DNA of 64,000 nucleotides from Heteronotia binoei. Lineage: Eukaryota. The stretch spans positions 126,356,001 through 126,420,000 of the forward strand of contig NC_083231.1 of the NCBI RefSeq assembly GCF_032191835.1, given 5' to 3'. The position numbers were made by a program, and so were the translations under genes. Of the stretch, positions 11,411 to 49,615 are shown piece after piece. Numbering within the stretch: the first letter of the stretch is position 1; each line of letters begins with the position of its first letter. The notes beneath the pieces are model-generated. The model was given only the letters and a program-made list of their open reading frames with translations, did not search any database and was not told the DNA's origin.

Positions 11411-11724
11411 GCTTCGGGTGAAGAGAGCCCCGCCGCCCCCCGCTTAACCCCAGGTTCCCAAGAGTGGCAGGAGGGAGCCGTGTGGGGCGCAGGTGGGGTC
11501 TGGCAGGCCGTTGGGAGGGAAGGGGAGGGGGGAGGCCTGGCCCCTGGGTGGGCANNNNNNNNNNNNNNNNNNNNNNNNNNNNNNNNNNNNNNNNNNNNNN
11601 NNNNNNNNNNNNNNNNNNNNNNNNNNNNNNNNNNNNNNNNNNNNNNNNNNNNNNNNNNNNNNNNNNNNNNNNNNNNNNNNNNNNNNNNNNNNNNNNNNNN
11701 NNNNNNNNNNNNNNNNNNNNNNNN

Positions 11725-13059: not shown

Positions 13060-13430
13060 CCAAAGCGGTGATCTGATCACCATCTCCAAGTCCTTGAAGG
13101 GCTGTCATAGAGACGGGGGGGCTAAATTGTTGTTTGTGGCCCCGGAAGGCAGGACCAGAACCAGTGGGTTGAAATTAAATCAAAAGAGTTTCCGGCTCAA
13201 CATTAGGAAGAACTTCCTGACCATTAGAGCGGTTCCTCAGTGGAACAGGCTTCCTCCTCGGGAGGTGGTGGGCTCTCCTTCCTTGGAGGTTTTTCAACAG
13301 AGGCTGGATGGCCACCTGACAGCGATGAGGATCCTGTGAATTTAGGGGGAGGCGTTTGTGAGTTTCCTGCCTTGTGCAGGGGGGTTGGACTAGGTGACCC
13401 TGGAGGCCCCCTTCCAACTCTCTGGTTCTC
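13060..13430 (+). mobile_element. CR1 LINE 3' end
   Basis: FRLNIRKNFLTIRAVPQWNRLPPREVVGSPSLEVFQQRLDGHL, then tail ggggttggactag.tgaccctggagg.cccttccaactct. Confidence 0.9.
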
Positions 13431-28316: not shown

Positions 28317-30160
28317 ATGGAGGTTTTGGGGCTGGAGCCGCCGGAAGGGCCCCCCCAGTCGCAGCCAGCCCCGCAGCCCATCCGCTTCGGAATCGAGCAG
28401 ATCCTGGGCGCTGGGCAGCCGCCCCCGCTCCACCCGGCCCCGGCCCCGGCCCCTTGCCTGGCTGCGCTGGGCGAGCCGCGAGGGGAAGCGGCGGACGGGG
28501 CTCTTTACGGCAGCGGCTACGGGGCAGACTACAGCCCGGCCTGCCCGCTGGGGGGCTGCGGCCTCCCCGGAACCCCTGGCGGCTGCGGAGGGGTGATCCG
28601 AGTCCCCGCCCACCGGCCCCTGGCCCCCGCTGCCCTGCAGCCCTCGCCCCCGGGGGGGACCGGCCTCACCTTCCCCTGGATGGAGAGCGCCCGGAGGCTG
28701 GCCAAGGAGCGCCTGGCAGGTGAGGACGCCGCCCTCCCCCCCCTTTCCTCCCCCAGCGCCCCCGGGGGGAGGGGAGGGGACGGCGTCAGGGGGCTCTCCG
28801 CTGTGTGCCAGCTGCCCTGGCCCCCCTTCTCTGCCGCCCCGCAGCTTCGAGCAGGCTGCCTGCGGGTGGGGGTGGGGGGCAGTTACCCCGACAGTCACGG
28901 GGACCCAGCTCCGGAGTCTGGCAGGTGGGACTGGCGGGCGAGGCTCCGGCCTGAAGATGGCGGCGCGGGGAGGCGGACCAGCTCCCACCAGAGCTCTCCC
29001 CAGAAGGCAGCGGGGGGGGGGGGGAGGGAGGGGCGCCAGAAGCGGGGCTGGCCGCGGGAACTGCAAAGAGGCGTGCGAGGTGCGGGGCGCTGCCGGTGCC
29101 GGCCTCAGGAGGGGAGGGGGCCGGCGGGGTCACGACTGCCTGCTCTGGTTCCCTCTACTCCCAGCCGCGCTGCCCTCGTTGGCCGGGGCCCGGCGGGTCG
29201 GCCACCCCTACCAGAACCGCACGCCGCCCAAGCGCAAGAAGCCGCGCACGTCCTTCTCGCGAGCGCAGATCTGCGAGCTGGAGAAGCGCTTCCACCGGCA
29301 GAAGTACCTGGCCTCCGCCGAGAGGGCCGCCCTGGCCAAGGCCCTGCACATGACCGACGCCCAGGTCAAGACCTGGTTCCAGAACCGCCGCACCAAGTGG
29401 AGGTAGGAGGACCGGCAGGGGGCACCGGGGAGGGGAGGGGAGGGGAGCGAAGCATCCAGCCGCCGGCCTCAGGACCTTTCTGGCTGCGGCGACGCTGCTT
29501 CCCTTGCGGGGGGGGGGCTGAGGCAGAGGGGGACAGCTGTGCTGGAGTGGAGGGGGGCGAAGGCCAGGAGGGATCTGCGCGGAGGAGGCGTCCTGGCAGC
29601 TCCGGAGGAAGAGGCCCTGGCGGCCGGGCAGGAGAGGGAGCGCCCCTCAAAGCCTGCGTGCCCGGCTGCCCCCCCCCCAAAGGCGCTTCCCGCAGCTGCC
29701 TGGGGCGCGAGAAGGAGAGGCGTGTCTGCCAAGGTCGCCACTCTGCACACGCTCAGAAGAGCCCCCAGGGGTCAGGGCGTCCCAGCCCCCTCCCCCAGCC
29801 AGGAGGGCCAGCCGCGTCTGCTCGGAAAGGGGGGGCAGAGAAGCGGGAGGCCGGGAGGGGCTTGTGGCGGGGGGGGCGGGGGGCTGGAAGGGCCAGCGCT
29901 GCCCTCGGCTCACCTGGCGCGGCGTCCCCCATTGCAGGCGGCAGACGGCGGAGGAGCGCGAAGCCGAGCGCCAGCAGGCCAGCCGCCTGATGCTGCACCT
30001 CGAGCAAGAGGCCTTCCCGAAGAGCCTGGGCGCCTCGCCGCTGCCACCCGACCCCCTGTGCCGCCACAACGCCTCCCTGGCCGCCCTGCAGAACCTGCAG
30101 CCCTGGGCCCGCACCCACCACATCACCTCCGTCTCCGGGGCGGCCGCCGCCCTGGTGTGA
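28317..30160 (+). CDS. TLX2: T-cell leukemia homeobox 2 (287 aa; exons 28317-28719, 29165-29402, 29938-30160)
   Basis: eh1/TN motif [10 protein letters not shown], hexapeptide TFPWME, homeodomain RKKPRTSF...[13 protein letters not shown], and C-terminus [12 protein letters not shown]...LQNLQPW. GT-AG introns with consistent phases (1, 2). Synteny with DQX1-AUP1-HTRA2 identifies the paralog as TLX2. Confidence 0.92.
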
Positions 30161-30207: not shown

Positions 30208-31596
30208 AGGCACCCCGCGGAGGAGGCGGGAAATGGAGAGAGCCTCTGCAGGCGAAAAGGCCGGATTCCCCGCTGGCCCTTTGAGAGGCACCAGGCAGCC
30301 CCCGGACCCCCGCAGGCAGCCCTCTGTGCTTGCACGCGCCTGCTGCAACGGGCCTCAACCCCGGATGGGGGGTGGTGGTGGTGGATCTGGGCCCGCAGCT
30401 CGGCGGCGGCACTCCCACAGCGCCCACATGCGATGCAGGGGGTACTACCCGGGATGCAGGTAGCTTTTTAAGGCGGCTGGGAGGAGGCGTCTGGCGAAGG
30501 GGCGAGAAGGGCAGAGGTGCTCCGGTGCTCCTCCTGCCCGTTTATTGAGCACGGAGGGCCAGGCTCTGCCGGGCCCAGTCTCTTGTGTGGAAGCCCCCCT
30601 CCCCCGTCTGCCGGGCCCCTCCTCAGGCTCGGGCTTTGGCGCGGCCCAGCTGCTTGCGTGGAGGCCAGGGGCCCTGGAGCTGCTGCAGGCCGGAGCAGGC
30701 CTCGCCCCTGCCTTCCCCCGCCCCCGCAGCCCCAAGCTCCGGAGCCCCCGGATTTCCCAGCTCCCCCCCGGAAGAGGCCTCTGGACAGCCTGGCAGCAGG
30801 GGTGCAAGGAGCCGCCCCCAGGGGGTCCGGCTCCCCTCCCGGTAGGGCAGCGCTTGGGTGGCCCGACACCTGCTGGAAGGCCCTGAAGGAGCACGTGGAG
30901 GGCGGCTGGCTGCTCCTTTGCCTCGAGGCCTGGCAGGAGCCCCCCACCCCACCCACAGGAGCCGCAGAGGAGGGCGCTGAGCCGGGTAGGTCAAGCAAGC
31001 CTGATCTCCTCAAATCTGGGGAGACCAGCAGGGCCGACTCTGGCAAGGACTGGGCTGGGAGACCTCCTGGGAATACCCCGTCGAGGCGCGGGAGCAGGCT
31101 TCTTTCAGCCCCCTCTCTGAAGATCCTCCAGGCCCCCAGTAGGGCCCAGTCGCCGCAGGTCCCCGGGACTTCCAGGTCCACGCGCATACGAAAGACAGAC
31201 AGACAAACGAAAGGACAGAGCGCAGAGGAGGCAGGGCCCTCCAAGGGCCATCTAGCTCCCCGCTCGCCCCTGCCTCTCGCTCCTCCCCGGGGGCTGCCCG
31301 GTTCGAAGGCAGGGCGCGGGGCGGGGGGGGGGGCTGGGGGCGAGGCCCCTTCCCAGAGACAGGCCCCTCCTGCGGCCGCAAAGGATGCAGAGAGGCCCCG
31401 GGGGCTGGGGGCGCCTCCAGCAGCAGCAGCAGGGGAGGGGGTCGAGCAGGTCCTGCCTTGCAGGCGGATGAGGGCTCCTCTCGCGGAGTGGGGGGGGGGG
31501 GAGCGCGAGGAAAGAGCTCCTTCCCGCCCCTCCCTCATCCGGGCTTCGGGGGGGGGGCTGCTGCGGAGCGGAGAAGCCTCCTGGCCGCGGCGCGCT

Positions 31597-31634
31597 CTGA
31601 TTGGCTAACTGGGCCGGCGCGGCCCTATATAGAG
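31597..31634 (+). promoter_or_regulatory. Core promoter of the neurofilament-like gene (inverted CCAAT + TATA)
   Basis: CTGATTGGCT (ATTGG 31600-31604) and TATATAGAG at 31626, ~105 nt upstream of ATG 31732. Confidence 0.7.
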
Positions 31635-31731
31635 CGGGGCGCTGTGGCGCAGTCCTCCTTCCTTCCCTCCCTCCCTGGCTTGCTGCAGAGGTAGGCGGCC
31701 TGCGTCGACAGCAGCGCAGGTGGCGGGCCCG

Positions 31732-34700
31732 ATGGAGTGGGAGGCGTGGGGCGGCTGGCGGCGGGGGCTCTGGCCCGGGGGGGAGGCGGCGGAGGAGCAG
31801 TTCCTGGGCGGGGGGGGCCTGCCGGTGGCGGACCCACTGGCGCGTTTGGACCTGGCGCAGGTGGGCAGCTTGAACGCAGAGCTGCTGGGGCTGCGCGCCC
31901 AGGAGGGGGAGCAGCTGGGGGCGCTCAACGACCGCTTCGCCGCCTACGTGGAGCGGGTGCGGGAGCTGGAGGGCCGCCACCGGGCGCTGCTGCTGGAGCT
32001 GGAGGCGCTGCGCCGCCAGGAGCGCGCCGCGCCGCGCAGGCCCCAGCTCTACCGGGCAGAGGCGCGCGGCCTGCGGGAACGGCTGCAGGCCGAGCAGGGC
32101 GACAAGGCCCGCCTGGAGGAGCAGCAAGCCCGCCTGCGCCAGGCCTGCGCCCAGCTGCGCGAGCGCTGCGCCCAAGAGGCCCGCCGGCGCCTGGACGCCG
32201 AGGAGACGCTGCGCCGCCTCCGCCAGCAGGCCGCCCGCGCCGCGCTGGCCGCCTCCCACGCCGACGGCGCCGCCGCCTCCCTGGCCGCCCAGCTGGCCTT
32301 CCTGCGCAAGCTGCTGGCCGAGGAGCGCGCCCAGCTGGCCGCCCAAGCCCAGCTGGCCGCCCAAGCCCGCGCCGCCCTGGAGGAGGGCCACCCGGCGGGG
32401 GCCAGCAAGCCCGAGCTGGCGGCGGCCCTGCTCGACATCCGCGCCCAGTACGAGCGCCTGGCGGCCCAGAACATGCAGGCGGCCGAGGAATGGTACCGCT
32501 CCAAGTTCGCCTCGGTGGCGGAGCTGGCCAGCCGCAACCAGGAGGCCGTGCGCGCCATCCGCCAGGAGACCGGCCACTACCGGCGCCTGCTGCACGCCCG
32601 CTCCGCCGAGATCGAGGCCCTGCGCGCCGCCGTCGACTCGCTGCACGGGCAGCTGGAGAGCCTGCAAGGGGAGCAGAGCGCCCAGGTGGCCCGCTGCCAG
32701 GTAAGGGGGCAGCCGGGTTGCTGCAGGGAGTGGGCGGAGCTCAGCGGGGGTGGGTAGCCCGGAAGACCCCCCTCCCGTCCTCCTTCCCGCCCTCCTGCCT
32801 CCTTCCACCCAGGCCAGGCCAGGCCAGGCAGCGGCCAGCACAAACGTCTCAGCCGCCTCCCGGCGGCACGGGTGGGGCTGAGAGAGCTCTGACTGAAACT
32901 GCTCTTGAGAGAATAGTTCTGAGAGAACTGGTCACCCAGCTGGCTTCAAGTAGAGGACCCGGAAATCCGATGCGAATCCATGCCCTTACCCACTACACCA
33001 ACCCGCTACAGGCAGCCTGAAGTGGCTCGCCATCTTGATCGAGCTGAACATCGTTTCAGAATCACCCTTGAGAGTTTCACTGAGCGGGACTTGCCTCTTG
33101 GGCCACTCCCAAGGCCAGTCTGGAATTAAGCAAAATCCTTCGGGACCCTTTAAATCCTGCCGCCTGCAATCCGCCATCAGGGGGCTGTCTCGCGGAGGCT
33201 TTGGTTCCCAGACACCGGAGAGCTTTCCCTGCGGCCCCCTGGCCTGCCGCTTGTGCTCTGGTGCTCCTGGGGAAGGGGGAGGGCTGCCTGGGGCCGCCCA
33301 CAGGGCCCCTTCTGCAACGGCCTTCGGGACTGGGCACACCCAGCCGCCACCGAGGTCTGAGCCCAGGGAAGGGAGGCCTTCTCTCTCCCGGCAAACTTGA
33401 CATCGGAATCCTCGGACCGAGTTGCCAGAGCTGGTGCAGCTGCGGGAGTCTCCCGAGGGAAGGGCCAGTGTTGATTCAGTGACACTTATTTGCTTTTCAT
33501 GTATATTTTAATGGAAGATTGTACAGTTATTCTCATAACCACTTTGTTAATGTATGTTTTATTTTGCTGGGCCCTGGCCCGAATAAATTATTGAACTGAA
33601 TTGAAGCACAATGCAATATTAGAGGTCAGACATCTGACCTTTTGCCAGCAGAAGAGAGAACTTCCTCGACTTAATAAGTGTATATAAAATGAAGCATTAA
33701 CTCTTTTTAGCAGGCAAGAACATCATGCACAGGTCAGGTGCAAGTTTATCCTACAAGTAAGGAGGGGGGGATGATTCCGCAAAAATTAGATTTCTGAGCA
33801 TTTCCAAGCTTTATGAACTCATCAGTTTTCTGCTGTCCCAAGATGTGGTCGTCTCTGAGATGGTGCCACCAGCAGGTATACCCAGATTGGATCCCTGCAC
33901 ATGAGAACTATGTGGAGAAGGCGGCAGGTTAAATCTTGCTAACTTTAATATGTGAGTGTCTTCTACATAAAACATAAGAACATAAGAGAAGCCATGTTGC
34001 ATCAGGCCAATCCCGTCCAACACTCTGTGTCACATAAGAACGTAGGAGAATCCCTGTTGGATCAGGCCAAAGGCCAATGGCCCATCCAGTCCAACACTCT
34101 GTGTCACATAAGAACATAAGAGAAGCCATGTTGGATCAGGCCAATGGCCCATCCAGTCCAACACTCTGTGTCACAGAAGAACATAAGAGAAGCCATGTTG
34201 GATCAGGCCAATGGCCCATCCAGTCCAACACTCTGTGTCACATAAGAACATAAGAGAAGCCCTGTTGGATCAGGCCAGTGGCCCATCCAGTCCAACACTC
34301 TGTGCCACATAAGAACATAAGAGAAGCCATGTTGGATCAGGCCAATGGCCCATCCAGTCCAACACTCTGTGTCACAGAAGAACATAAGAGAAGCCATGTT
34401 GGATCAGGCCAATGGCCCATCCAGTTCAACACTCTGTGTCACACAGTGACCAAAAACACCCCCAAGTGCCATCAGGAGATCCACCAGAGGGGATGGGACA
34501 CTAGAAGCGCTCCCACTGTTGCCCCTCCCAAAGCACCAAGAATACAGAGCATCACTGTTCCAGACAGTTCCAATAATATGCTGTGGCTAATAGCCACTGA
34601 TGGACCTCTGCTCCATATTTTTATCTAACCCCCTCTTGAAGCTGGCTATGCTTGTAGCCACTGCCACCTCCTGTGGCAGTAAATTCCACGTTAAACATCC

Positions 34701-37700
34701 TTTGGGTGAAGAAGTACTTCCTTTTATCCATTCTAATCCGACTACTCAGCAATTTCATTGAATGCCCCCTAGTTCTTGTGAGAAAGGGGAAAAAGTACTT
34801 ATTTCTCTACTTTCTCCATCCCATGCATAATCTTGAAAATCTCTGTCACCCCGCAGTCCACGCTTCTCCAAGCTAGAGAGCCCCAAGCGTTTTAACCTTT
34901 CTTAGGGAAAGTGTTCCAAACCTTTAATCATTCTAGTTGCCTTTTCTGCACTTTTGCCAATGCTATAATATCCTTTTTGAGGTGTGGTGACCAGAATTGT
35001 ACACAGTATTACAAATGAGACCACACCATCGATTTATACAGGGGCATTATGATACTGGCTGATTTGTTTTCAATTCCCTTCCTAATAATTCCCAGCATGG
35101 CGTTGGCCTTTTTTATTGCAGTCGCACACTGTCTTGACATTTTCAGTGAGTAATCTACCACGGCCCCAAGATCTCTCTCTTGGTCAGTCTCTGCCAGTTC
35201 ACACCCCATCAACTTGTATTTGTAGCTGGGATCCTTGGCTCCAATGTGCATTACTTTGCACTTGAACAATTGAAAACAATTGAACCCTAAAGGAATTATG
35301 CAAATGATAGCAAATTGACTAGAAAACTTCTTGCTAGCTGTCATCAGATTTCCAAAGCAAGGTTTTAAGCAGGTTAGAATTCGCACTTGTTCACAGCTAC
35401 TAAAGAACAGGAAGCCAGTTCTTTATGAGCTTCACTAGTGAGCGGTCAGGTTAAGAGGCAGCCCTGAACTTTGACCAGATCGCAGGGTCCACATCAAGAC
35501 TCCCTCTAAGCTGTTGAGTTTTGTGAGCAAAAATTCCACTTTGTGAGCTACTGGCACGAAAGTTGAACAAAGGAGGAGTCAAGTGCGCCTTCAAGATCAA
35601 CAATCAAGTTTTATCCCGAAGGTAAGCTTTCTTGTGCTCCAAGCACACTTCATCAGACGAGGAATCCGGTACGGGGAGCAGAGCTACACAGAGCTGGTAG
35701 GCAGGGGTTGAGAATGCAAAATGGTTCAAGTTTAAGATCCAAGGACAGAATAGTCAAATTAACAAATGGAGCAAACCTTTGATCTGGGTAGCGGGAGCAT
35801 GAGAAACCAATAAAACAGTAACATGTCACAATGCGAGATTGTCTGTTAATCACTCTATTGTTATAAGCAAGCCTGGGAAGCTTTTCCCATTCAACTAATT
35901 TACCTTTTAACATGTAACATACATATAGTTTGGCATGAGAAGAAAAATACGTTAAAATATAGTGGAAGATGGTCAAGATCAAAGGTTTGCTCCATTTGTT
36001 AATTGTACTATTCTGTCCTTGGATCTTAAATTTGTACCATTTTGCATTCTCAACCCCTGCCTACCAGCTCTGTGTAGCTCTGCTCCCGGTACCTGATTCC
36101 TCGTCTGATGAAGGGTGCTTGAAGCACATGAAAGCTTCCATTCTGAATAAAACTTGGTTGGTCTTCAAGGTGCACGTGACTCCTACTTTGTTCTACTGCT
36201 TCAGACCGACACGGCTGCCCGCTTGGATCTATGGCGTGGGAGTTGTGAACTGCTGTATCCATGAGTGTGCGCTGGGGTCCTCCTTCCTGAGCGAAGACAA
36301 AAATGTGTGAGCTGGAGGCTAAAAAACTGTGAGCTAGCTAGCTCACACTCACTCAGCTTAGAAGGAACCCTGGGCCGCAGAAGCAAAGGCTGCAGACACA
36401 TTCAAAGGGAGCACCCAAGCGAGGGCCAGCGTTTGCCCGCCCTCAGACAGAAAACATCAGCTGGAGCCCCGCCCCCCGCCCGAGCTGTCTCTGCCCCATA
36501 GCCTAGACAAGGGGCCGGAGCAGCTGCACGGGATGATCACAGAGGCCACCTAGTCCAGCCCCTGCTCAATGGGTCTAGAGCATCCCTGACGCCGGGGAGG
36601 GGGCGCTCCCCACTCCGGATGGGGCACCTGATTCCACCGCCCAACTCTGTCCCCAACCCTGTCCCCAAGCGCCCGGTCGCCCAGCCCCGCCCTCGGGAGT
36701 CCGCTCTCCTCTGTTGCTCCCAGGACCAGCCCCTCCGCCTGTCCCCCTCGGGCTGCTCCCCTCTGCACCGCCTGCCTGGCGCGGGAAGCGCAGACCTGCT
36801 GCCGGAGCCCGGGCACCCAGAAGGCCCCCCGGGAAGAGGACTGCGCGTCGGTGGCCAGTGCGGGGGGCGGGGGGGAGGGCGGGAGGAAGCGGCTTCCCCC
36901 CGCCGGGGTTGAGGCGGAGCAGGGAGCCTTCCTCCTCCTGCTGCGGGTCTTCCTGGCGGTGCTCCTCTCTCTCCCCGGCTGCTGCAGGCGCGCGCGGCGG
37001 AGCTGGAGCAGGAGCTGTGGGCGGCCAAGGAGGAGATGGGGCGCCACCTGCGCGAGTACCAGGAGCTGCTGAGCGTCAAGATGGCCCTCGACATCGAGAT
37101 CGCCGCCTACAGGTGAGGCCGGGCCCTGCACCGCGGGGGGAGGAGGAGGAGGAAGCGGGGGGGGGGGCTCCGCGGGGGTCGATCTCCCCCGCCCTGGCTA
37201 GTCCTGGGGGGGGGGGCAAGCCCTGCAAGTCTCCTGGATTCAACAGCCCCTTGGGCGGGGGTCGCTCCGTCCTCCTGGCGCGTGGCTGAGGCCGGCCTGG
37301 GGGGGGGGCTGAGTGCCCGCGGGGGGAGGAGAGGCCCTGAGGAGGGAGGGGGCTCCCATTGCGCCCCTCCCCCTCCCCCGCGTGGGTTGGACATCCGGGG
37401 GTCCTGGCTCCCCTCCCTCCGGAGCCTCCAGCGGGGGGGGGGCAGGGTTTTCTCGGCTGGCCGCCCAGCCCCTCCTCCCCAGGGGGGCTAGATGGAGCCC
37501 GCAGTTCTCCCGAGGCTCTCTTCCTCCCCCTCCCTCTCCCCCCAGCCCATCCTCTGCTCAGCACCCAGGGGCGGGGGACCTCTTCCCCCCCCCCCGGCAG
37601 GAGCCTGCCCTCTCAGAAGACGCCCCCGCAGGCCTGCCCGGGGAGGGGAGGGCTGTTTTCAGCCTGGCCCTGGGAAGAAAGAGGGTCCCCCCCCCCCGCC

Positions 37701-38039
37701 ACACCATCGTCAGGGAGCTCTTGAGGGCTGGCCGAGGGAGGCGGCGGGCAGAGCAGCTCCAGGGGCCACCAAGGCGCCCCCCCCTCATGATTCCGCTGCT
37801 CAGCCCGGGAAAGAGACAGGGGAGGGGGGGAGAAGGGGCCCCTCGCCAGCCTTTGGTCGGAGGCTCTGGCTCGGAGCCCCCCAGCAGCCCTGCCGCTAGC
37901 CAGAGGGCCCTCGGGGGGGGGGCGGGGGCGTTCTTGGGATCGCTGGCTCAGGCGCGCTCTCTCTCGCTCTCTTCCCAGGAAGCTGCTGGAGGGCGAAGAG
38001 ACGCGCTGGAGCTCTGCGGGGCAAACGCCGCTGAAATAG
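31732..38039 (+). CDS. Type IV intermediate filament protein, NEFL/alpha-internexin-like (384 aa; exons 31732-32700, 36988-37112, 37979-38039)
   Basis: [16 protein letters not shown] (coil 1A), [35 protein letters not shown], and [20 protein letters not shown]|KLLEGEETR. Giant exon 1, 125-nt exon 2 and phases 0/2 match NEFL/INA gene structure. Splice sites are canonical and there are no frameshifts. Confidence 0.9.
33960..35260 (-). mobile_element. CR1 LINE 3' portion with tandemly amplified tail (33960-34440)
   Basis: [33 protein letters not shown] on the minus strand, plus ~8 copies of the ~60-bp tail unit. Located in IF gene intron 1. Confidence 0.9.
35565..36240. mobile_element. Inverted Penelope pseudo-LTR pair with two hammerhead-ribozyme-like cores
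   Basis: Arms of ~210 bp (35570-35785 vs 35975-36200) around a spacer. Cores CTGATGA...GAAA at 36105-36133 (+) and 35656-35628 (-). Confidence 0.75.
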
Positions 38040-39286: not shown

Positions 39287-39292
39287 AATAAA
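39287..39292 (+). terminator. Likely polyadenylation signal of the IF gene
   Basis: First AATAAA after the stop (38039), followed by GT-rich downstream sequence. Further AATAAA at ~39738 and 40128. Confidence 0.55.
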
Positions 39293-40039: not shown

Positions 40040-41406
40040 TATCAGCTCTTTAAAAGACGCATGATTTGCCGATAACAATATTAATCTAAAACAAAACACG
40101 TAAGACGCAAACATTAAAGTAGCCCACAATAAATTAATAGGAGGCTCCTCGTCACATTCCCCAGTCATTTCCCCTTCTTCTATTAACTCACACTGGTTGT
40201 ACCAGAATTAGTGTTACTTTTTGTTCCCAGAGTTCCAAGAAAGGCTTTCACTTTTAAAAGGCGGCTTCTTTTTCAACACCTTCTGAGAAACATGGGAAGC
40301 TGGTCACCTTCCCACCTCCTCCTGTGGAGGGGACCAGATGCCCGAGGGATGCTTAACCTCCATGCCGCACCCCCTCCAAATCTCCACCACAGCCAGTTTT
40401 TTAGGAAGAGCTGCTTCCTCTCAAAGGAACCCCTCCAGCCTGTCTCTGTGTTGCTCACAGGAGCCTGGGTGAGGAATTACGCCCCCCTCCCCAATGACTC
40501 CAGCCCATAAGAGAGGCCCGGTCTGCTGCCCCCCCCCTTGCAGGTGATTGACAGTTCAGGCCAAAGCTCCACACTGAGGAGGCTCCTCTTCAGAAACCCG
40601 AGGCAACTGGGGTGGGCTTTCTGAACGGCAGGTCACTTGCATGGGTGCTGAACTGCATTTCCCTCCCCCCAGGCCCTGGGTACATGACCCATGGATTCAA
40701 GGCACAGTTTTTGGCTCCTAGACGTGGGGGTCTTTCTCTCCCTCCAGTCCCTGGAGATACCCTCCCCCACCATGTCCAAAGATGTGCAAACGGGCGGGGG
40801 GGGGTGGGAGGAGAAGAGGCCCCAAGCTGTTCTCTGAAGCCAGGGGGGAGTGATCCAAGCCAGGAACAGCAGTTCTCCAGCAGGGGGGGGGCGGGCAGGA
40901 CTCTCCACCTGCCCCCCCAAGCATCCCTCAGGTCTGGCCTGCCTCCTGCAGCCTCCCTCCCTTAGGCAACACCCAAACCAAAAAGACTAGCCTGCCAGAC
41001 AGCCTTCAGTTGCTCACTGGGAGGGAGGGCAGTGCAGCCAGACGCCATTAGGGCCTCCCCCTCCCCGCAGGCCCCGCTTGCTTCCTCCCCACAGCATTTG
41101 CATGACACCAAGACCACTGGAAGCACGTTTATGCACAGGACGAGAAACTGCCGCCCTCCCTCCCTCCCTGGAGACCCCCAGCACAGCCCCAGCGACCTTG
41201 CTTCCCCTGCCCCCTCACCCACCGCAAGACCCTGACCTCCCCTGAGAGGCTGCCGGCCATTGGGTTTGGAGAGCAATGCCCCGCCCACCACCCAAGCAGG
41301 TGAGGCACCGCCCCGCTTAGAGCCGACTGCCTTTGCCCTGGCCCCACACCTGCCACCTCCAGCCTTCCGGGCTCGTGGCCGGGGCTGTCTGCTCCCCGCA
41401 GAGGCC

Positions 41407-44400
41407 TCACTGAAGCACGCAGACGTCCTCGCTGTTGTCTGCAGCCTTGGCGGCCAGAGGCTCCTCGCCCTGGGGTGGGGGGGACGACACTCCTCCCGCC
41501 ATCTTCTCCCGCAGCTCCAGCAGCAAGTCCCGGCTCTCACTGGGGGGCAGGTTGCTCAAGTAGTACGGGGGGGCCACTTCTGCCAGCCTGCGGGGAGAGA
41601 GGAGGGCAGCGATGAGGCTGGTGGCAGTGACGCCCCCCCCCCCCGGCAACTCCTCAGAACTCCCCCCAAGCCACAGCACAGCGATCCCAGTGGCAAGGCT
41701 GGAGACGTGGAGGCCGAGGGCCCGGAAAGGGAGAGCTGAGCAGTCATTGGCCTGGGTGGAGGGCAGTGCGGGCAGGGGGGTCTTTCCATCCCTCTGCATA
41801 CCTGGGAGTCTCTCAAATATTGTAAGGAAGCAACACAAAAGGCAAAATCCATGCTGGAGACTGCTTGCAAGAGAACAGCCAATGACGCCCTTGCAACAGA
41901 TCTATGGGAAACTCCCATTTGGAAGTCTGTGTAGGGTTCTCATTCCCAAACCTCACAAAGGCCGCTGCAGAGCTAGAAAATGTACAGAGGGGGACAACCA
42001 GGATAATGGCGGGGCGGGGCGGGGCTGGGGGGTTGGAGCCCCTTCCCCACGAGGGAAGGCCTTTCAGCTGAGAAAAGAGGGAGTGGGGGAGGGGAGGATG
42101 TGCCAGGAGCTGTGCCTCCAGCTTCAGGGCACCCACCAAGGTCCATCAGCATCATGGAGTGCCTCTTTTTTCCAACCACCAACTAAAATCTAAAATTAGT
42201 CACCACTCAACATAGTGACACTGGCAAGGAAACGGCCTTCTAAGGTGGCTGGACTGAGTCATGGGGGAGACAGAGGTCCACTAACAGCTACCAGCTGTGG
42301 TGAGTAAAGGGCACCTCCAGAGGCCGTGGGGAGGGGGACCTCCAAGTCCCAGCCCTCAGAGGGGAAGGCTTGGGCCTCGACGCCCCATCTGTTGCTCTTC
42401 CAGGGCAACTGGGTGAGAAAGGTGGTTGGCCTCAGGATCCCACAACATCACCCGCAAACAGATTTCAGTTTCTCTCATAATATGTGTAGTTTCCTCAGAA
42501 TTTCTTCTTGTCAGGAAAAAAGGGTTCACTGTAGCTTCAAAATGTCCAGACCTTCTGCATTGCTACGGAAGCTCTTGCAGTCATAATAAAGGCACAGAAT
42601 CCCCACCCCCAAAAGGAAAAGGCCAGAATCTAAGACCCGCGAGACCACCAACAGCCGGCCCCCGCCCAGCCCCAGGATGCTCACATGTCCGGCTCAATCT
42701 CTGAGACGACGCTGAGGCAGTTGTCCAGCGAGATGGTGAACTCATGATAGAGCAGCCACGGCGGAGGGGGGTGGGGCGGCTGGCGCAGCCGGTAGCTGCA
42801 GGTGGGGGGCAGCTGGGCCACGTGCTTGCTGGTCAGCAGCAGGTAGTTGCCGGAGCCGTCGATGTCACGAGCCACCTGCGGGGGAGAGGAGAATGAGAAG
42901 AACCCAACTGGAACAGCTTCCCCCTCTGCTGCCCGAGACAGGCTGTGGGCTCTTCTGCGAAGGACCCAAGGCAGAAAGAGGCTGGGAGGGAAGAAGAGCT
43001 GCCTTGGCGGGCGGGGGGGCACTTGGCCTTCCACTCCCCAGGGCCACACTGGCCAACATGACCGCCCCCCCCCCCCCCCGACTGCACCAAATCTCAGCCC
43101 CCCTTCCGGACACGAGGTGCTCGCCCTCAGCACCTGGAGTGCCCCCACCCACCTTGAGGAAGAAGCCTGAGAGGAGGGCCTGCTTGAGCCGGCGGGGGCT
43201 GTCGTCAGAGCCAAAGGCCGGCGGGGAAACAGGCAGCTCAATGCGCTCCATGACCTCCAGGAGCTCCGCCCGCACTGCCCTGGCCAGCTGCAAGGCTGCC
43301 TCGCTCACCCCATGCTTCCGGCACCAGCTTTCTGGGTCGCTCTCTGAAGGAGGCAGGGAGGGGAAGAAGGAGTAAGCAAGAGGCCAGCAGCAGCAGCAGC
43401 CCCCCCAGCCCCCCTGTCCCCCCGGCCACTCACGCTGCAGGAAGGTGTTGAAGACGTTGATGAGGGTGAAGTGGTCTCCAGCAGGGTGCAGCAGGGTGCG
43501 CTGCCTTGCCAACACTGCCTCCCCCCAGCGAGTGGGTGGGGTGACGAAGCAGGGCCCCGCTGCAGGGAGGGGGGGAAGAGCGAGAGAGCAGCTCAGGCCA
43601 GTGACCCAGGCAAGGGGGTCTAACAGCAGAGGGGTTCACGGGGTGGAGGGAAGAGGAGCGCACCTGTCAGCATGGCGGCCAGCGTGAGCATCTCTTGGAC
43701 ACACTCAAACTCACAGGAGGCCAGGAGGGCCTTGGCCAGCTGGGGATCAACCGGGAACTCGGACATGATGATGCCCACCTCCGAAAGGCTGCCGCCATCA
43801 TCCAGGGCGGCCAAGTAGTCCAGGTCCTCCAGGGCCTGCATGAGGGACTCCGGGGCTGGGGAGGGAAGAGCGGCAGGGCTGAGGCGGAGCAGGCCTCCCA
43901 CAGCGCCGGGGCCCCCACCAGCCCCGCAGCCCCTCCTCACCTGGCCGGTCGAGGAAGTCGCACTGGCCCATGTCCGCAATGTCCAGCCTCTTCAGCAGCA
44001 GCACCAGGCGGCTCAGGTTGGCCTCCGTGATGCGGGCCGGAGGCAGGGCAGGGAGGCTCTCCTCGTAGAAGGACTCGGTGTAGAGGCGCAGGCAGGTCCC
44101 TGCCGGGCACAGGAAAGGGCTATGGGAACGAGGCGCCCCCCAGCAGCAGACCTGCCCTCTGCCTGGCCCCGCCAGACTCACCTAGGGGGCTCCCAGCCGC
44201 CCTCAGCCGCCGGCCCTCCGCCTGCTTCTTGCTGATCGGGCGCAAGCCCTGTGACTCAGCCCGGATCTGCGGATTGTAGACCTGCCCAGGAGAGACAACG
44301 GGAGAGGGTGAGGAGGGCAGACATGCTCCACCCGCAGAGGAGCCACGGGTCGCTGCCAGCAAGCAAGCCAGAGGAGCTGGGGGGGAAATAACTCCTTCAT

Positions 44401-47400
44401 TGGCCAGGCTGCTGGAGAAACACCAGCTGCACCCGCCTCGCTCGGCTGCCAAGCGTGGCCAGGATTCCCCAGCAGAGAGGGGCAGGTGGCTGAGTGCTCC
44501 CTGGCCGCAGAGCTGGCAGGACGGGGAGGGCGGGAGGCAGGGCACCATCTCTGCAGGCTCCCCCTGGGCTCAGCTCCGAGAAGCGGGCTGGACGCCTGCC
44601 CCAGGAGCACCCCCACTCACACTGCGCAGCTCCAGCCCCGTGTCGATGACATGCCGGACGCTCCCCACGGAGAAGGCGGAGTCTGCCAGCCAGTGGGTGA
44701 CAATCACCCGGCGTGCCGGAGGCTCCAAAGTCTCGTACAGTTTTTGGACCTGCCGCCCCACGCTGGGATGAAGGGGCAGCACCAGCAGGGAGCCCAGGCA
44801 GGGGTCCAAGGCCTCTGCTGCCCCATGGAGGGCCTCGCAGCACTCCTGGATCTCCTGGCGGGGGAGGAGGGGAAAACGTCCGTGACTGGGGTGTCCCACC
44901 AGACCCCAAACTCTGTCCACCGGCCTCTTCCCCTCCCAACATGCTCCGTTCCCCCTGCCCCAACCACCTTCCTGGGCCAGCCCCCTGCGCAGCGGCTGCC
45001 TCACTCCAAAAGCTCTCTGAGCTGGAGAAGAGACACCTGCCTGCCAAGAGGCTACGTCTGTCAATGGCTACTAGTCACAGGGGCTGAGGGGCACTAAAGC
45101 TCTGAATCCCAGGGGAAGGCGTTAGCCTCTTGTTGGTCCTCCAGAGGCAGTGGTTGACCTGACCCAGCAGGGCTCTTCCGATGCTCTTTTCAGGAGAAGG
45201 CCTCGGCCTCTCTGCCCCATTGTTGGCCCTCCAGAGGAACTGCCTGGCCACTCTGTGAGACAGGAGGCTGGACTAGATGGACCCTCACTGGTCTGACCCA
45301 TCAGGGCTCTTCTAATGCTCTTCTCAGGGGAAGGGCTCAGCCTCTCTGCCCCGTTGTTGGCCCTCCAGAGGAACTGGCTGGCCACTGTGAGAGACAGGAG
45401 GCTGGGACTAGATGGACCCTCCGTGGTCTGACCCAGCAGGGCTCTTCTAATACTCTTCTCAAGGGAAGGCCTCAGCCTCTCTGCCCCGTTGTTGGCCCTC
45501 CGGAGGAACTGGTTGGCCACTGTGTGAGACAGGAGGCTGGACTAGGTGGACCCTCCCTGGTCTGACCCAGCAGGGCTCTTCTGATGTTCTTATGAAAGCC
45601 TCTCTGCCCTGTTGTTGGCCCTCCAGAGGAACTGGCTGCCCACTGTGTGAGGCAGGAGGCTGGACTAGATGGACCCTCCCTGGTCTGACCAGCAGGGCTC
45701 TTCTGGTGTTCTTCTCAGGGGAAGGCCTCAGCCTCTCTGCCCTGTTGTTGGCCCTCCAGAGGAACTGGATTCCCTGCTGGCCTGTCCAGCCAAGCTGAGA
45801 GGCATTTGTTTCAATAGAGGGAGAGGATACAGGCCACATGATCAAATGATCTTAAGGGACCCTTCACATCCGGGCCACTTGCTATTTGAGATTTTACCAT
45901 CAGGTAGGCGATATAGAGTGTTGAAGGCAAAGACAAATAGATTCAAGGACAGCTTGTATCCAAGTGCCGTGGTTAAGCTAAATGCAGGGTTATGAATGGT
46001 TATGTGTTTTTAGATGCATTTAAATGGTCTATGTATATGTCCTTTTGTAGATGTGATTTTGGTATGTTTGTGGAAGAGCACCTCATTTCGTTGCTCTCAT
46101 NNNNNNNNNNNNNNNNNNNNNNNNNNNNNNNNNNNNNNNNNNNNNNNNNNNNNNNNNNNNNNNNNNNNNNNNNNNNNNNNNNNNNNNNNNNNNNNNNNNN
46201 NNNNNNNNNNNNNNNNNNNNNNNNNNNNNNNNNNNNNNAATGCAGAAAGGTTGTTTCCATTCTGAACCCCCAACCAGCAGCCTAAAATGGCTCACGTGCC
46301 CCCCCCCCCCCTTCTGACCAGACTGCTCCTTACCTGCTCGCTGGCCAAGAAGACCATCACGTCTCCAGCTTCCTCCTCCTTGTGCAGCTCCAGCACGGCT
46401 TGGCAGGCAGCAGCCACCCGGCCCTGAGGAGGGAGGGCTCCCGGTAGGTCAGGCGGGGGGCAGGGGCAAGCGGCGGCACCCGCACCAGCGGGGCATCAGG
46501 ACAGAAGCGGCAGAGTGGCTCCTCCAGCGAGGGGCTCCATCACCACTATGAGGCGCAGCTCGGGGCGCTGGCGCTGAGCGTCCTTCAGCAGTCCCAGGAG
46601 CAGGTCTGTGGCCACCGTGCGCTCCTGGGCCTCATCCAGCACCACCACCCCATACTGCCGCAGCAGGGGGTCAGAGGTCATCTCCTGCAAGAGGACCTCA
46701 TCCGAGCAGAACCTGCAACCCACACAAGGGCAGGTGGTGACCTAGAAGAGGCTGCGCTACCGGCCCCTCAATCACCAGCACTTCCCAGCGAGACCACGCA
46801 ATAAGTGACAGCCGACAAAGGCCCCCAACGAGACAGCCAAGCAGCAAAGCACCCCTTACCTGAGCAGGGTCTCCGGGATGCAGCAGTCCTCGTAGGGGAT
46901 GCAGTAGCCCACCTCGTGGCCCACGTTGAGGTCCATTTCATCTGCCACGCGCAGGGCCAGGCTCAAGGCAGCCAAGCTGTGGGGCTGAGCGCAGACCACC
47001 TGGCCATGGGCAAACTGCAGTGAAAGCGCATACTCCGCACACCACTGAGGCACCTGAGGAAGGAAGGATGAAGGAAGGCAAACCTGAGTGCTCCTCCTCC
47101 TCACTAGAGCACGACCCTGGCCCATCTGGGAAAGGCTGCTCCCCAGAAGACACCACCCGAGGAGGAGAGATGGCACAGGCAGCGTGTGTCACTCTGGGGG
47201 GCCCAGCTTCAAGAGCTGCTGTCCCTGGCTCAGTCGCCAGTCTCCAACCCTGCACAGGAGTCCAGCAGAACTGAGGCAGAAAAACAGGTTTTGGCTGCTT
47301 CACACCCCAACTGCGAGAAGGTCCAGTGAGAGCAGATATGCTTCTCAATTGCACACATTTGCCACAGAACAGCATCTGCTGAATCATAGGTGGTGCATTC

Positions 47401-48306
47401 AGTACGGTTAAAGTTGGCTGGATAAGAAATAAGCAGTGCAAATATTCTCCCCTCCCAATCAAAGACGTCATGCTTTTTGGTGGTTCTACCCCCTGTGCCT
47501 ATCCCGCTGCAACAACGCAGCCAGGCAAGGGATCCAAAGGAGCCAGCGAGGGACCCCCCCCACTCCTGTCCTCTGGGCCAAGGGGCCACTCGGCTGCCTG
47601 GCGAGGCAGTAAGCCCCCCCCCTGGGGGAGGAAGAGGCAGGCGGGGGGGGGCGCTGCAGACCCTCCCCTCCCCTCCCCCCCCCCGGGGACTGGCCTGGGT
47701 GCTCTTGCCGGCGCTCTGCAGCCCCCCCCCCCGTTGCCCCAGCAGGCAGAAGAGGCAGGCTGGGGGGGGGGGCGCTGCAGACCCTCCCCTCCCCTCCCCC
47801 CCCCCGGGGACTGGCCTGGGTGCTCTTGCCGGCGCTGGGGCTCTGCAGCCCCCCCCCCCGTTGCCCCAGCAGGCAGACGTGCCCCGCCAGGAAGAGGCAG
47901 GCGGGGGGGGGGGGGCGCTGCAGGCCCTCCTCTCCCTCCCCCCCCCGCGGGGGACTGGCCCGGGTGCTCTTGCCGGGGCTCTGCAGCCCCCCCCCCGGTG
48001 CCCCAGCAGGCAGACGTGCCCCGCCAGGAAGAGGCAGGCTGGGGGGGGCGCCGCAGACCCTCCTCTCCCCTCCCTCCCCCCCCCCCCCCGGGGACTGGCC
48101 TGGGTGCTCTTGCCGGCGCCGGGGGGCCCGGAGAGGAGCAGGAGCGGCGGGCGGCGGTGGAGGTGGCGCAGGAAGGCCTCCTTGGCGGGCCAGGCCGGCA
48201 GCCCCCGGCGCCCCCGCAGCAGCTCGGCGTAGCGCGACGAGAAGGGCAGCCCGTCGAAGGGGTTCCGCGGCAGCTCTCCTTCCTCCTCCTCTCTCCGCGC
48301 CTCCAT
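41407..48306 (-). CDS. DQX1: DEAQ-box RNA-dependent ATPase 1 (717 aa after repairing two 1-bp indels; exons 48306-48100, 47053-46860, 46712-46334, 44854-44621, 44281-44182, 44099-43941, 43855-43664, 43559-43434, 43343-43153, 42875-42685, 41587-41407)
   Basis: [12 protein letters not shown], motif I GKST, motif [25 protein letters not shown], and C-terminal [18 protein letters not shown]...CVLQ*. All exon phases chain correctly. Intron 1 is GC-AG. Exon 3 has a +1/-1 indel pair enclosing a TGA as assembled. Confidence 0.9.
45125..45775 (+). repeat. Tandem array of a CR1 3'-end unit (~120 bp, ~5 copies)
   Basis: Repeated ggccctccagaggaactgg...ggaggctggactagatggaccctc...ctgacccagcagggctcttct...gcctctctgccc in a DQX1 intron. 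Confidence 0.8.
45790..46100 (+). mobile_element. Rex1/Babar LINE 3' end
   Basis: [41 protein letters not shown] is the typical Rex1/Babar C-terminus, followed by an AT-rich 3'UTR. Confidence 0.8.
47620..48115 (-). repeat. Minisatellite (~120-145-bp unit, 4 copies) derived from the DQX1 exon 1/intron 1 junction
   Basis: GGCAAGAGCACC(C/G)AG|GCCAGTCCCC recurs with junctions at 48100, 47960, 47816 and 47695. Confidence 0.85.
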
Positions 48307-48364
48307 GGCCGGCCTGCCGGGGGAAGCGATGACCCCGCCCACCCCCCTGCGGCCCCCGGGGACA

Positions 48365-48495
48365 GGGGCACGTGACGCCACTGCTAGCCAATGGGCCGCT
48401 CGCTTCCTCTTCCTCTGGCGGGGGCGGAGCCGAGGGGCACTTCCGGCCACGCGCCCGCTCGTGGGGAGCGCTCTTTCCTCGCGCATGCGCTCCGC
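48365..48495 (-). promoter_or_regulatory. DQX1 CpG-island promoter
   Basis: GTCACGTG E-box/CRE overlap (48369-48380), CCAAT at 48388, GC box, ETS CCGGAAGTG (~48438-48446), and NRF1-like GCGCATGCGC at 48481. Confidence 0.6.
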
Positions 48496-48644
48496 CTGCC
48501 GGCCCTGGTCCGGCGGGAGACCCAGAGCAAAGAGAGAGAGAGAGAGGGAAGGAAGGAAGGAAGGGGGCTCCGGGGCCTCCAAGACTCCCACCCTGCGAGA
48601 GGGGCCTTCGCCAGTCCAAAGACCTCTTTGGTTCAGCATCTGTA

Positions 48645-49615
48645 TCATAAAGTTGGAAGGGACCTCCAGGGCCATCTAGTCGAACCCCCTGCACAATGCA
48701 GGAAACTCACAAACACCTCCCCCTAAATTCACAGGATCCTCATTACTGTCAGATGGCCCTCTAGCCTCTGCTTCAAAACCTCCAAGGAAGGAGAGCCCAC
48801 CACCTCCCCAGGAGGAAGCCTGTTCCACTGAGGAACCGCTCTGTCAGGAAGTGCTTCCTAATAGAATATAGAATCCTAGAGTTGGAAGGCACCCCCAGGT
48901 CACCTAGTCCAACTCCCTGCACAATGCAGGAAACTCACAAACGCCTCCCCCTAAATTCACAGGATCTTCATTGCTCTCAGATGGCCATCTAGCCTCTGTT
49001 GAAAAACCTTCAAGGAAGGAGAGCCCACCACCTCCCGAGGAGGAAGCCTGTTCCACTGAGGAATCGCTCTAACGGACAGGAAGTTCTTCCTAATGTTGAG
49101 CCAGAAACTCTTTTGATCTACTTTCAATTTATCAATGGTTTGGATTTGGAGGAAGGAAGAGAGGGGATGCTTATTGAATCTGCAGAGGATACTAAATTGG
49201 GAGCGGTCTCAAATACAGTAGAAGACAGAAACAGGATGATCTTGACAGGCTGGAAAGCTGGGCTGAAACCAATAAAATGGATTTAATGCGGATACATGTA
49301 AAGTTTTGCATTTCAGAAGGAAAAATCCAATGCATAGTCATAGATGGGGAGACTTGTCTTAGGAGTAGTATATGCGAAAAGAATCTAGGGGTCTTAGTGG
49401 GCCATACGCTGAACATGAGTCAACAGTGTGGCTCAAAAGGCAAATGCGATTCTGGGCTGTATCAACAGAAGTACAGCGTCCAGATCGCGTGATGTGATGG
49501 TATCACTTTACTCTGCCCTGGTAAGACCTCACCTGGAGTCTCGTGTTCAGTTTTGGGCACAAGAAGGAGATAGACAAATTGGAGTGGGTCCAGAGGAGGG
49601 CAATGAAGATGACGA
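48645..49615. mobile_element. CR1 fragments (minus-strand 3' ends 48645-49110; plus-strand RT remnant 49130-49615)
   Basis: CR1 tail sequences; ADDTKLG-like motif, EKNLGVLV, KANAILGCI, YSALVRPHLE. Confidence 0.8.

Follow-up and report, generated by a model that had tools for sequence, protein, structure and literature searches.

A Probable Squamate Orthologue of Neuronal Intermediate Filament Family Member 2, a Nearly Tail-Less Relative of Neurofilament Light, in Heteronotia binoei

Introduction

The closest described relatives of the gene reported here are the light type IV intermediate filament proteins. The neurofilament light gene NEFL adjoins NEFM, and the alpha-internexin gene INA has three exons. 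Xenopus has XNIF ("low molecular weight neuronal intermediate filament", family member 1). In addition, an NF-L protein deprived of its tail retains the ability to co-assemble with other members of type IV (Ching and Liem 1993, PMC2119857).

Within a 64-kb window of the H. binoei genome (the whole stretch of DNA analysed, to which all coordinates refer), we studied a single intermediate filament gene flanked by a TLX-type homeobox gene and a helicase gene. We are confident that it is the squamate orthologue of "Neuronal intermediate filament family member 2" (hereafter NIF2), an ancient jawed-vertebrate paralogue and sister gene of NEFL, which most likely encodes a core-only neuronal subunit.

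The likeness to NEFL extends to the positions of introns 1 and 2, the LDL(S/A)QV pre-coil motif, and the two rod termini, LNDRFA at the start and YRKLLEGEE at the end; over the rod, the identity is 43%. The two proteins differ at their ends. The NEFL copies in our data set are ~540–620 aa long and have a head of ~90 residues and a glutamate-rich tail of ~150 residues encoded on two further exons, whereas the head of the H. binoei NIF2 protein has ~45 residues and its tail 12. Judged by branch lengths, NEFL also evolves about 10 times more slowly than NIF2 in reptiles. Alpha-internexin and the fish proteins inaa/inab (gefiltin) are likewise light type IV proteins, and some fish NIF2 proteins have been automatically labelled alpha-internexin, but the INA tail is ~90 residues long. 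The experimental tail-less NF-L (PMC2119857), which has the same NF-L-type rod and almost no tail, offers a functional model for NIF2; it is, however, an engineered mammalian construct with the full NF-L head, whereas NIF2 is natural and has a short one.

A Three-Exon Type IV Gene between a TLX-Type Gene and a DQX1-Like Helicase Gene

The NIF2 gene model was rebuilt by a script and comprises three exons on the + strand, with a coding sequence of 1155 nt that is translated into 384 aa without an internal stop. Exon 1 (31732–32700; 969 nt, 323 codons, donor CAG/gtaagg) ends in phase 0 and encodes the short head, coil 1A, coil 1B, L12, and most of coil 2. Intron 1 (32701–36987; 4287 nt, GT...AG) is followed by exon 2 (36988–37112; 125 nt, acceptor ctgcag/G, donor CAG/gtgagg), which carries the end of coil 2 to ...DIEIAAYR and ends in phase 2. 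Intron 2 (37113–37978; 866 nt, GT...AG) divides AAYR/KLLEGEE, and the coding part of exon 3 (37979–38039; 61 nt, acceptor ttcccag/G) encodes KLLEGEE and the 12-residue tail, closed by TAG at 38037–38039. All four splice sites are canonical (GT-AG), in-frame stops were found 5' of the ATG, and none of the N runs in the window (4124–4450, 11555–11724, 46101–46238, and 53194–53715) reaches the gene. The first AATAAA 3' of the stop (39287–39292, + strand) is a candidate polyadenylation signal, recognised by its motif only, which would give a 3'UTR of ~1.25 kb. Intron 1 contains a 67-bp tandem array and a 185-nt inverted repeat. A 529-aa antisense ORF (31252–32841, − strand) and the other long ORFs over exon 1 were rejected as genes and taken for by-products of a GC3 of 95%.

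The core promoter (31600–31631, + strand) consists of an inverted CCAAT box (ATTGG, 31600–31604) 132 nt upstream of the ATG and a TATA box (TATATA, 31626–31631) 106 nt upstream of it. The layout CTGATTGGC ... CTATA(T/A)A was also found 5' of the orthologues of a close relative (locus L007), Elgaria, Chelonoidis, gar, and stickleback. The promoter block aligned with that of L007 at 56/70, while the adjoining head-coding DNA gave no alignment.

The Pfam Filament domain (PF00038) matched residues 57–374 over model positions 1–313 of 313 (E 2.7e-73). The rod is complete, both its start and end motifs are read in the sequence, and the protein belongs to the intermediate filament family. The gene is of type IV: exon 1 codes without interruption for everything from the head into coil 2, and the rod introns of types I–III are missing. 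Both intron positions and phases are the same as in a gecko NEFL gene and are kept in the NIF2 genes of gar, stickleback, turtle, and lizard. The junctions ...ARCQ/ARAAELEQ and AAYR/KLLEGEE of NIF2 align with ...LVALQ/DTVNKLEN and AAYR/KLLEGEE of gecko NEFL (L008), and an equivalent of exon 2 is present in the NIF2 genes of gar, stickleback, turtle, and Elgaria as well as in gecko NEFL. The intact 384-aa type IV gene with clean splice sites and a TATA/CCAAT promoter that the first-pass annotation had described was thus recovered in every part.

Upstream of NIF2 lies a TLX-type homeobox gene (28317–30121, + strand), TLX2 by position. It was located by tblastn with the TLX part of P0001, has three coding blocks (approximately 28317–28751, 29158–29457, and 29936–30121), and encodes a homeodomain (E 2.2e-21). 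Downstream and tail to tail with NIF2 lies a DEAQ-box helicase gene of the DEAH family (approximate limits 41400–48700, − strand). Its motif II reads DEAQ (exon 46499–46741), and a P-loop exon lies near 48.1 kb. As Pfam gave no match in the short helicase exons or in an AUP1-like ORF, the helicase was identified using PDB sequences, the best match being DHX15 (E 2.5e-16). We take it to be DQX1-like from the DEAQ motif, from what is generally known of that gene, and from a 720-aa HA2/OB-fold helicase at the same position in the leopard gecko. The 3' end of the helicase gene is collinear with the gecko helicase in L006 by tblastx; it should be noted that, the DNA being GC-rich, tblastx gave much noise downstream and was applied solely to placing this end.

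The order TLX–intermediate filament gene–helicase, which the first-pass annotation had proposed for this locus, is repeated in the leopard gecko (Eublepharis), and TLX also lies upstream of NIF2 in Elgaria and Alligator, so the TLX2-adjacent position is shared by these sauropsids. Within 10 kb of NIF2, no TLX gene was seen in tortoise, gar, or stickleback: the tortoise and gar loci showed no neighbour gene at all over this distance, and the stickleback orthologue did not adjoin tlx2. No NEFM-like gene was found in the 64-kb window, NIF2 being its only intermediate filament gene.

Members of the NIF2 Family

In UniRef, the family is named "Neuronal intermediate filament family member 2", and its zebrafish gene is si:dkey-33c12.3 / LOC335380. 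The RefSeq records of the lizard, turtle, alligator, salamander, coelacanth, and shark orthologues read "neurofilament light polypeptide-like" or "alpha-internexin-like". Orthologues of ~390 aa were found in at least 15 squamates at 66–80% identity. The family is also held by turtles, alligator, caecilians, salamanders, lungfish, coelacanth, sharks, rays, and chimaera and, among ray-finned fishes, by bichir, sturgeon, gar, and many teleosts. The gene is thus the lizard representative of an old vertebrate gene that the databases already annotate and not an unrecognised one, and the idea of retention in squamates only must be given up for a family that spans chimaera to lizards under a database name of its own. 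The proposed absence from mammals was supported: the homology searches found no member in mammals, nor in birds, frogs, or snakes.

The H. binoei gene shares with the other members its clade of ~390-aa proteins, the three-exon structure, the intron phases, a tail of 11–13 residues beyond KLLEGEE in all members, and the CCAAT/TATA layout; the TLX neighbour is common to gecko, Elgaria, and alligator. It differs from them in a shorter head, an altered N-terminal motif, and changes at seven family-invariant residues.

A turtle orthologue was found on a contig of 1961 nt without introns, assembled from a sequencing run and most simply read as a spliced transcript. Meanwhile, the Logan contigs P0013, P0018, P0019, and P0057 extend into intron 1 and are therefore genomic, so that four of the five short public contigs examined were dropped as expression evidence. 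For Pogona P0004 and Latimeria P0064, there was no record as an exact gene product. In the open full-text literature, we found no paper describing the NIF2 family, and subscription journals, which lay outside this search, may describe it; the family is apparently unstudied.

Phylogenetic Position of NIF2

The tree was inferred with IQ-TREE under LG+C20 from 67 rows, with desmin and a hagfish intermediate filament protein as outgroups. The H. binoei protein fell inside the type IV ingroup (100/99), and thus with type IV rather than type III. NIF2 formed a clade of its own (100/100) on a stem of 0.49, inside which the branching roughly followed the species tree, and this clade grouped with NEFL at 97/96. 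With 17 GC-rich or odd rows removed, the support was 100 for NIF2 and 94 for NIF2 with NEFL. The INA proteins of a bird (P0289) and of teleosts (P0125, P0159) fell outside the NEFL–NIF2 clade, and holding NIF2 together with INA and the XNIF-like proteins was rejected by the AU test (p 0.0045). Lamprey NEFL joined gnathostome NEFL weakly (91/68 in the 67-row tree; 63 after row removal). Alligator NIF2 was placed among the lizards on an end branch of 0.84, which we treated as a long-branch and composition artefact.

These trees place NIF2 as the sister of NEFL specifically. The first-pass annotation had taken the gene for a further copy of the joint NEFL/INA ancestor; its standing as an extra type IV paralogue was upheld, but not that point of origin.

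Head, Rod, and Tail, and the Probable Role of NIF2

The complete rod of NIF2 would form parallel coiled-coil dimers and, by this route, enter 10-nm filaments. Since tail-less NF-L co-assembles (PMC2119857), NIF2 is most likely a core-only subunit, one that would co-polymerise with NEFL, NEFM, or INA in neurons and add rod mass without side-arms. Both the neuronal site of expression and these filament partners are what we infer from the relatives of the protein.

The main competitor of this reading is that NIF2 is functional but serves in another cell type (glia, muscle, lens, or epithelium) or builds filaments alone. The family was named "neuronal" from homology alone, and the stem of 0.49 together with an evolution faster than that of NEFL would suit a changed role. 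Self-assembly has a precedent in INA, a type IV protein that assembles by itself (PMC2119857). The nearest relative of NIF2 is nevertheless NEFL, and the short head argues against efficient self-assembly. Moreover, all characterised light type IV proteins are, to our knowledge, neuronal. We therefore regard a role outside the neuronal co-polymer as unlikely, though it is the most serious of the alternatives.

Constraint on the H. binoei Copy

A second alternative is that the H. binoei copy is still open but no longer needed, and on its way to a pseudogene. The head gives one reason for it. In the family, the head carries the motif M-x-x-D/E-P/A-F ... R-K/R-P-W-D/E-E-Y-R, after which comes an Arg/Ser-rich stretch; in H. 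binoei, GWRR persists, but other residues stand in place of the PWEEYR part and the Arg/Ser-rich stretch is absent. The head is 12–24 residues shorter than in all other lizards, and a close relative (P0013) still has a longer one. In addition, of the 116 positions at which 12 other members, spanning shark to lizard, share one residue, seven differ in H. binoei; two of these substitutions, Y343H and N352S, fall in the strongly conserved coil 2 end. Repeated loss of the family elsewhere also seems to have occurred, as the homology searches gave no member from snakes, birds, frogs, or mammals.

The rest of the gene speaks for constraint. The reading frame of 1155 nt contains neither a stop nor a frameshift, all four splice sites follow the GT-AG rule, and conservation extends to the promoter block. 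Exon 1 showed 89% DNA identity to L007 with gaps in multiples of three only, whereas intron 1 had no alignable similarity to the L007 intron. The end branch of the H. binoei protein (0.15) is within the range of other lizards, with Sceloporus, Rhineura, Tiliqua, and Paroedura having branches at least as long. The dN/dS ratio, proposed as a check by the first-pass annotation, ranged from 0.19 (YN00, a value from one of five pairs) to 0.57 (NG86, range 0.46–0.57), but at a GC3 of 0.95–0.99, dS is unreliable in either direction. The YN00 value argues against decay and the NG86 values would favour it; as NG86 is inflated by the near-saturated GC3, we based our judgement on how much better the exon is conserved than the intron.

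Taken together, the conserved intron positions, the CCAAT and TATA promoter, and the 109 of 116 invariant residues kept indicate that the gene is probably functional, while the shortened head and the seven changed residues point to a constraint that is present but looser than that on NEFL. Decay of the H. binoei copy is, on this evidence, improbable.

Discussion

Two further readings concern the identity of the gene. The first-pass annotation had suggested a kinship with Xenopus XNIF, which, like NIF2, is a light type IV gene that mammals are without. In our data set, XNIF is represented by XNIF-like proteins of a shark (P0127) and teleosts (P0133, P0137), to which the lizard protein P0132 probably belongs. 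They belong to another lineage, outside the NEFL–NIF2 clade, and have 455–577 aa with a real tail; moreover, no frog sequence was among the NIF2 matches. Together with the AU result, this makes orthology to XNIF very improbable. That the gene is an ordinary NEFL or INA orthologue that has been relocated, as the automatic names "NEFL-like" and "alpha-internexin-like" of its orthologues might suggest, we consider practically negligible, because NIF2 and NEFL form separate clades with full support, NIF2 and a normal NEFL of ~550–620 aa occur together in five species (Paroedura, Pogona, Alligator, Chelonoidis, and Latimeria), the NEFL gene of a gecko is on a different contig, with four exons and an acidic tail that NIF2 does not have, and the INA side is excluded by the AU test; the first-pass annotation was right to see an extra paralogue.

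The preferred reading thus remains that of a squamate NIF2. Its split from NEFL may go back to a whole-genome duplication, an origin made plausible by the paralogy of the human LOXL2/3/4, TLX, PCGF, and HTRA genes. A wider picture can be drawn tentatively, which we consider slightly less likely than not: NIF2 would be a fourth, naturally tail-less light neurofilament protein, the twin of NEFL by genome duplication, kept beside TLX2 in reptiles, lost in separate events from mammals, birds, frogs, and snakes, and never studied for its function.

The discovery itself is modest, because the family already stands in the databases under its own name. For annotation, it means that the gene should carry the label of a NIF2 orthologue; its orthologues currently appear in public records as NEFL-like, alpha-internexin-like, GFAP-like, or vimentin. 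For neurofilament biology, NIF2 is of interest as a widespread sister of NEFL without a tail, and its role is directly testable, since zebrafish, axolotl, and lizards all have the gene. Given the patchy loss of the gene, one may ask what took over in mammals and birds. If the wider picture is true, NIF2 would be a natural experiment on a neurofilament core subunit without a side-arm.

The Filament Gene and Its Protein

The model of the filament gene was examined with a script joining exon 1 (31732–32700, 969 nt, followed by intron 1 in phase 0), exon 2 (36988–37112, 125 nt, followed by intron 2 in phase 2), and the coding part of exon 3 (37979–38039, 61 nt), all on the + strand. The joined exons gave a 1155-nt frame of 384 codons ending in TAG, and the gene model of the first-pass annotation proved exact to the base. 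The junctions are GT-AG throughout, stop codons lie in frame 5′ of the ATG, and none of the four N runs in the window reaches the gene. The Pfam Filament model aligned over its entire length with residues 57–374 of the protein (E 2.7e-73), and the best full-length solved relative was vimentin (E 4e-46). An inverted CCAAT box (31600–31604, +) and a TATA box (31626–31631, +) are located 5′ of the ATG, while the first AATAAA is found 1.25 kb beyond the stop codon.

The GC content is 78% in exon 1 and 95% at the third codon positions of the gene, and the protein consists of 22% Ala, 14% Leu, 13% Arg, and 13% Glu. This extreme composition accounts for the numerous long ORFs that overlap one another on both strands; a 529-aa antisense ORF over exon 1 (31252–32841, −) was rejected as a gene, being a by-product of the 95% GC3. 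Intron 1 contains about seven head-to-tail copies of a 67-bp unit (33972–34443, 91–96% matches) as well as an inverted repeat (35601–35785/35976–36160) with 185-nt arms, 92% complementary and separated by a 190-nt spacer, which is probably a transposon-derived hairpin.

Family Membership and Phylogeny

A search of 5.8 billion proteins with the window protein returned a long list of relatives of ~380–410 aa. The closest came from lizards, geckos, and one amphisbaenian (66–80% identity), followed by turtles (57–61%) and then by teleosts, bichirs, sturgeon, sharks, rays, coelacanth, lungfish, caecilians, and salamanders (48–58%). Members from gar, chimaera, and zebrafish (si:dkey-33c12.3/LOC335380) were added by a second search seeded with the alligator protein. 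The names given to these orthologues conflict (NEFL or NEFL-like, alpha-internexin or alpha-internexin-like, GFAP-like, vimentin), and UniRef uses one name for many of them, “Neuronal intermediate filament family member 2”, hereafter NIF2. Public annotation is also inconsistent among the orthologues of Gekko kuhli (P0001), Eublepharis (P0002), and Varanus (P0011), where a 663-aa TLX–NIF2 fusion model, the name “GFAP-like”, and the name “Vimentin” are found. When 1.84 billion cluster representatives were scanned exhaustively with HMMER, only those from gecko, shad, alligator, pipefish, shark, and turtle and two unnamed ones had NIF2 as their best match; all the remaining representatives belonged to other filament families.

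For the phylogenetic analysis, rod domains were cut from 67 proteins: 31 NIF2; 16 NEFL, including those of five species possessing both genes; bird and teleost INA; four XNIF-like proteins (“low molecular weight neuronal intermediate filament”, UniRef “family member 1”); lamprey proteins; NEFM/NEFH-type proteins; and desmin and hagfish outgroups. In the IQ-TREE analysis (LG+C20), NIF2 formed a single clade (support 100/100) on a long stem of 0.49, within which chimaera branched first and then sharks, roughly matching the species tree. NEFL was its sister (97/96). NEFL and the lamprey proteins were united weakly (91/68), and INA and the XNIF-like proteins were left unresolved at the type IV base. 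When 17 rows, mostly GC-rich or compositionally odd, were dropped, the support was still 100 for NIF2 and 94 for NIF2 with NEFL. A constraint placing NIF2 with INA and the XNIF-like proteins, a group picked once the tree was known, lowers the log-likelihood by 16.9 units (AU p 0.0045).

The clade, its sister position, and the AU test thus indicate that the filament gene is neither NEFL, INA, nor XNIF. Judged from the rod sequences, NIF2 is a fourth light type IV lineage with NEFL as its nearest. The first interpretation is partly supported. The proposal of an extra neurofilament-class paralogue beside NEFL is borne out by this clade, as a sister to NEFL, and by the five species having both genes; the grouping with INA is rejected together with the suggested relation to XNIF. 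Retention in squamates, as first proposed, was too narrow a description: the gene is this genome's orthologue within an ancient, widely distributed family that already has a name and reaches from chimaera and sharks to lizards.

Gene Structure and Proposed Mode of Action

The NIF2 genes of gar, stickleback, tortoise, and Elgaria have the same three coding exons as the window gene, with exon 1 ending in ...(K/R)(Y/C)Q and exon 2 in AAYR. The gecko Paroedura has a NEFL gene whose exon 1 (1068 nt) ends in ...LVALQ|gtgagt and whose second exon ends in AAYR; two further exons encode an acidic tail. In the protein alignment, both window junctions share columns with those of Paroedura NEFL, a direct test which shows the type IV intron pattern. 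With the exact exons and the Filament match, this confirms an intact neurofilament-class gene between a TLX-type and a DQX1-like gene.

All NIF2 proteins stop 11–13 residues past KLLEGEE and thus have practically no tail. Head length in the family is ~55–65 residues, compared with ~90 in NEFL, and the heads have in common an N-terminal motif with an Arg/Ser-rich stretch after it. The window protein retains GWRR and the LDLAQV pre-coil motif; since its Arg/Ser-rich stretch is gone and its PWEEYR motif changed, its head is the shortest among lizards. The longer head persists in a close relative (contig L007, 89% DNA identity in exon 1). In squamate NIF2, a longer Ala-rich segment substitutes for the usual L12 linker.

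The window protein combines an NF-L-like rod, its start and end motifs intact, with a short head and no tail. The rod would be expected to dimerise and enter 10-nm filaments. Ching and Liem (1993, PMC2119857) reported that co-assembly with alpha-internexin and the other triplet proteins persists in NF-L cut back to two tail residues. By analogy with such tail-stripped NF-L, NIF2 would most simply serve as a core subunit lacking a side-arm and co-polymerising with other neuronal type IV proteins. Expression in neurons is assumed here, from the kinship with NEFL and the database name only, and a non-neuronal or self-assembling role seems unlikely.

Function or Decay

The open frame and canonical splice sites of the filament gene were counted for function. 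The inverted-CCAAT and TATA layout is found upstream of NIF2 in gar, stickleback, tortoise, Elgaria, the close relative, and the window. All gaps between exon 1 and that of the close relative are in-frame, and the intron past the donor site shows zero alignment. The window protein retains 109 of the 116 residues invariant in twelve other members, and its terminal branch length (0.15) is typical of lizards. A turtle orthologue is represented by an intron-less 1961-nt contig of a sequencing-run assembly (SRR22107230), which codes for all 388 aa of the protein. With its introns, the tortoise gene extends over 2961 nt; the contig is most simply a spliced transcript, which means that at least one sauropsid uses the predicted splicing.

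The seven changed residues include Y343H and N352S in the conserved coil 2 end, and, judged from branch lengths, the evolutionary rate of NIF2 in reptiles is roughly ten times that of NEFL. The dN/dS was 0.46–0.57 by Nei–Gojobori and 0.19 by YN00 (one pair), with dS untrustworthy because GC3 is 0.96–0.99 in all species. As far as sequence goes, the changed residues, the Nei–Gojobori values, and the fast evolution are evidence for looser constraint. We conclude that the gene is probably functional; a decaying copy, to which the looser constraint might point, is improbable.

Neighbourhood, Distribution, and Origin

Located 5′ of the filament gene on the same strand is a homeobox gene in three blocks (about 28317–28751, 29158–29457, and 29936–30121, +) that bears the TLX signature. 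A DEAH-family helicase gene lies 3′ of it, tail to tail (about 41400–48700, −; P-loop exon near 48.1 kb, motif II exon 46499–46741, 3′ end near 41.4 kb). Its motif II is DEAQ where DHX15 has DEAH, a change characteristic of DQX1. An assembly gap (46101–46238) falls within this gene, so the helicase model will be incomplete. The ORF at 62530–63063 (−), with an acyltransferase HxxxxD-like NHVTHFDH motif, had no match in a Pfam search; it may be AUP1, which in human is the next gene past DQX1. No second intermediate filament gene was found within the 64-kb window. An interspersed repeat translating as ERFLSGTGFLLGRWWALLPWRFFNRG has at least five copies in the window, at 13221–13316 (+), 17613–17711 (−), 17753–17836 (−), 48776–48934 (−), and 49013–49117 (−).

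The leopard gecko locus has the same order: a homeodomain gene (+), the filament gene (+), and a helicase of 720 aa (−) carrying HA2 and OB-fold domains. A TLX gene is also directly upstream of NIF2 in Elgaria and Alligator, where in the latter an IL12p40_C-domain gene stands downstream in place of the helicase. At the Alligator mississippiensis locus (L005, 5075–15990), the NIF2 gene is very compact (1290 bp) and highly divergent (end branch 0.84), and Pfam labels are missing from the model of the upstream gene although it contains the TLX homeodomain. In stickleback (locus L002, 6944–18027), NIF2 lies between a nanos-type zinc-finger gene and an MRP-S26 gene, and tlx2 is not adjacent; the vertebrate loci were compared over 10-kb flanks.

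No mammal, bird, frog, or snake was found among the NIF2 matches of the window- and alligator-seeded searches, which covered annotated proteins. NEFL of snakes, birds, monotremes, marsupials, and placentals is abundant in the same database, so snakes, birds, and mammals are well represented there; a lizard-like snake NIF2 would have been placed near the top of the window-seeded list. Mammals thus appear to be without an orthologue, as had been proposed. The absences from these groups point to several independent losses or suggest GC-rich assembly gaps; GC-rich genes are often absent from assemblies, especially those of birds. The sister relation of NEFL and NIF2 fits the whole-genome-duplication origin first proposed, as does the location next to TLX2, DQX1, and possibly AUP1, and we give NIF2 about an even chance of being an ohnologue.

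No paper on the NIF2 family was found in the open-access literature, itself only part of the record, and NIF2 biology seems unexplored. A 577-aa protein of the lizard Phrynocephalus forsythii (P0132) is of the XNIF type (family member 1) in its rod and tail, and its N-terminus looks mispredicted. If this protein is XNIF-type, squamates may retain two light type IV genes that mammals are without.
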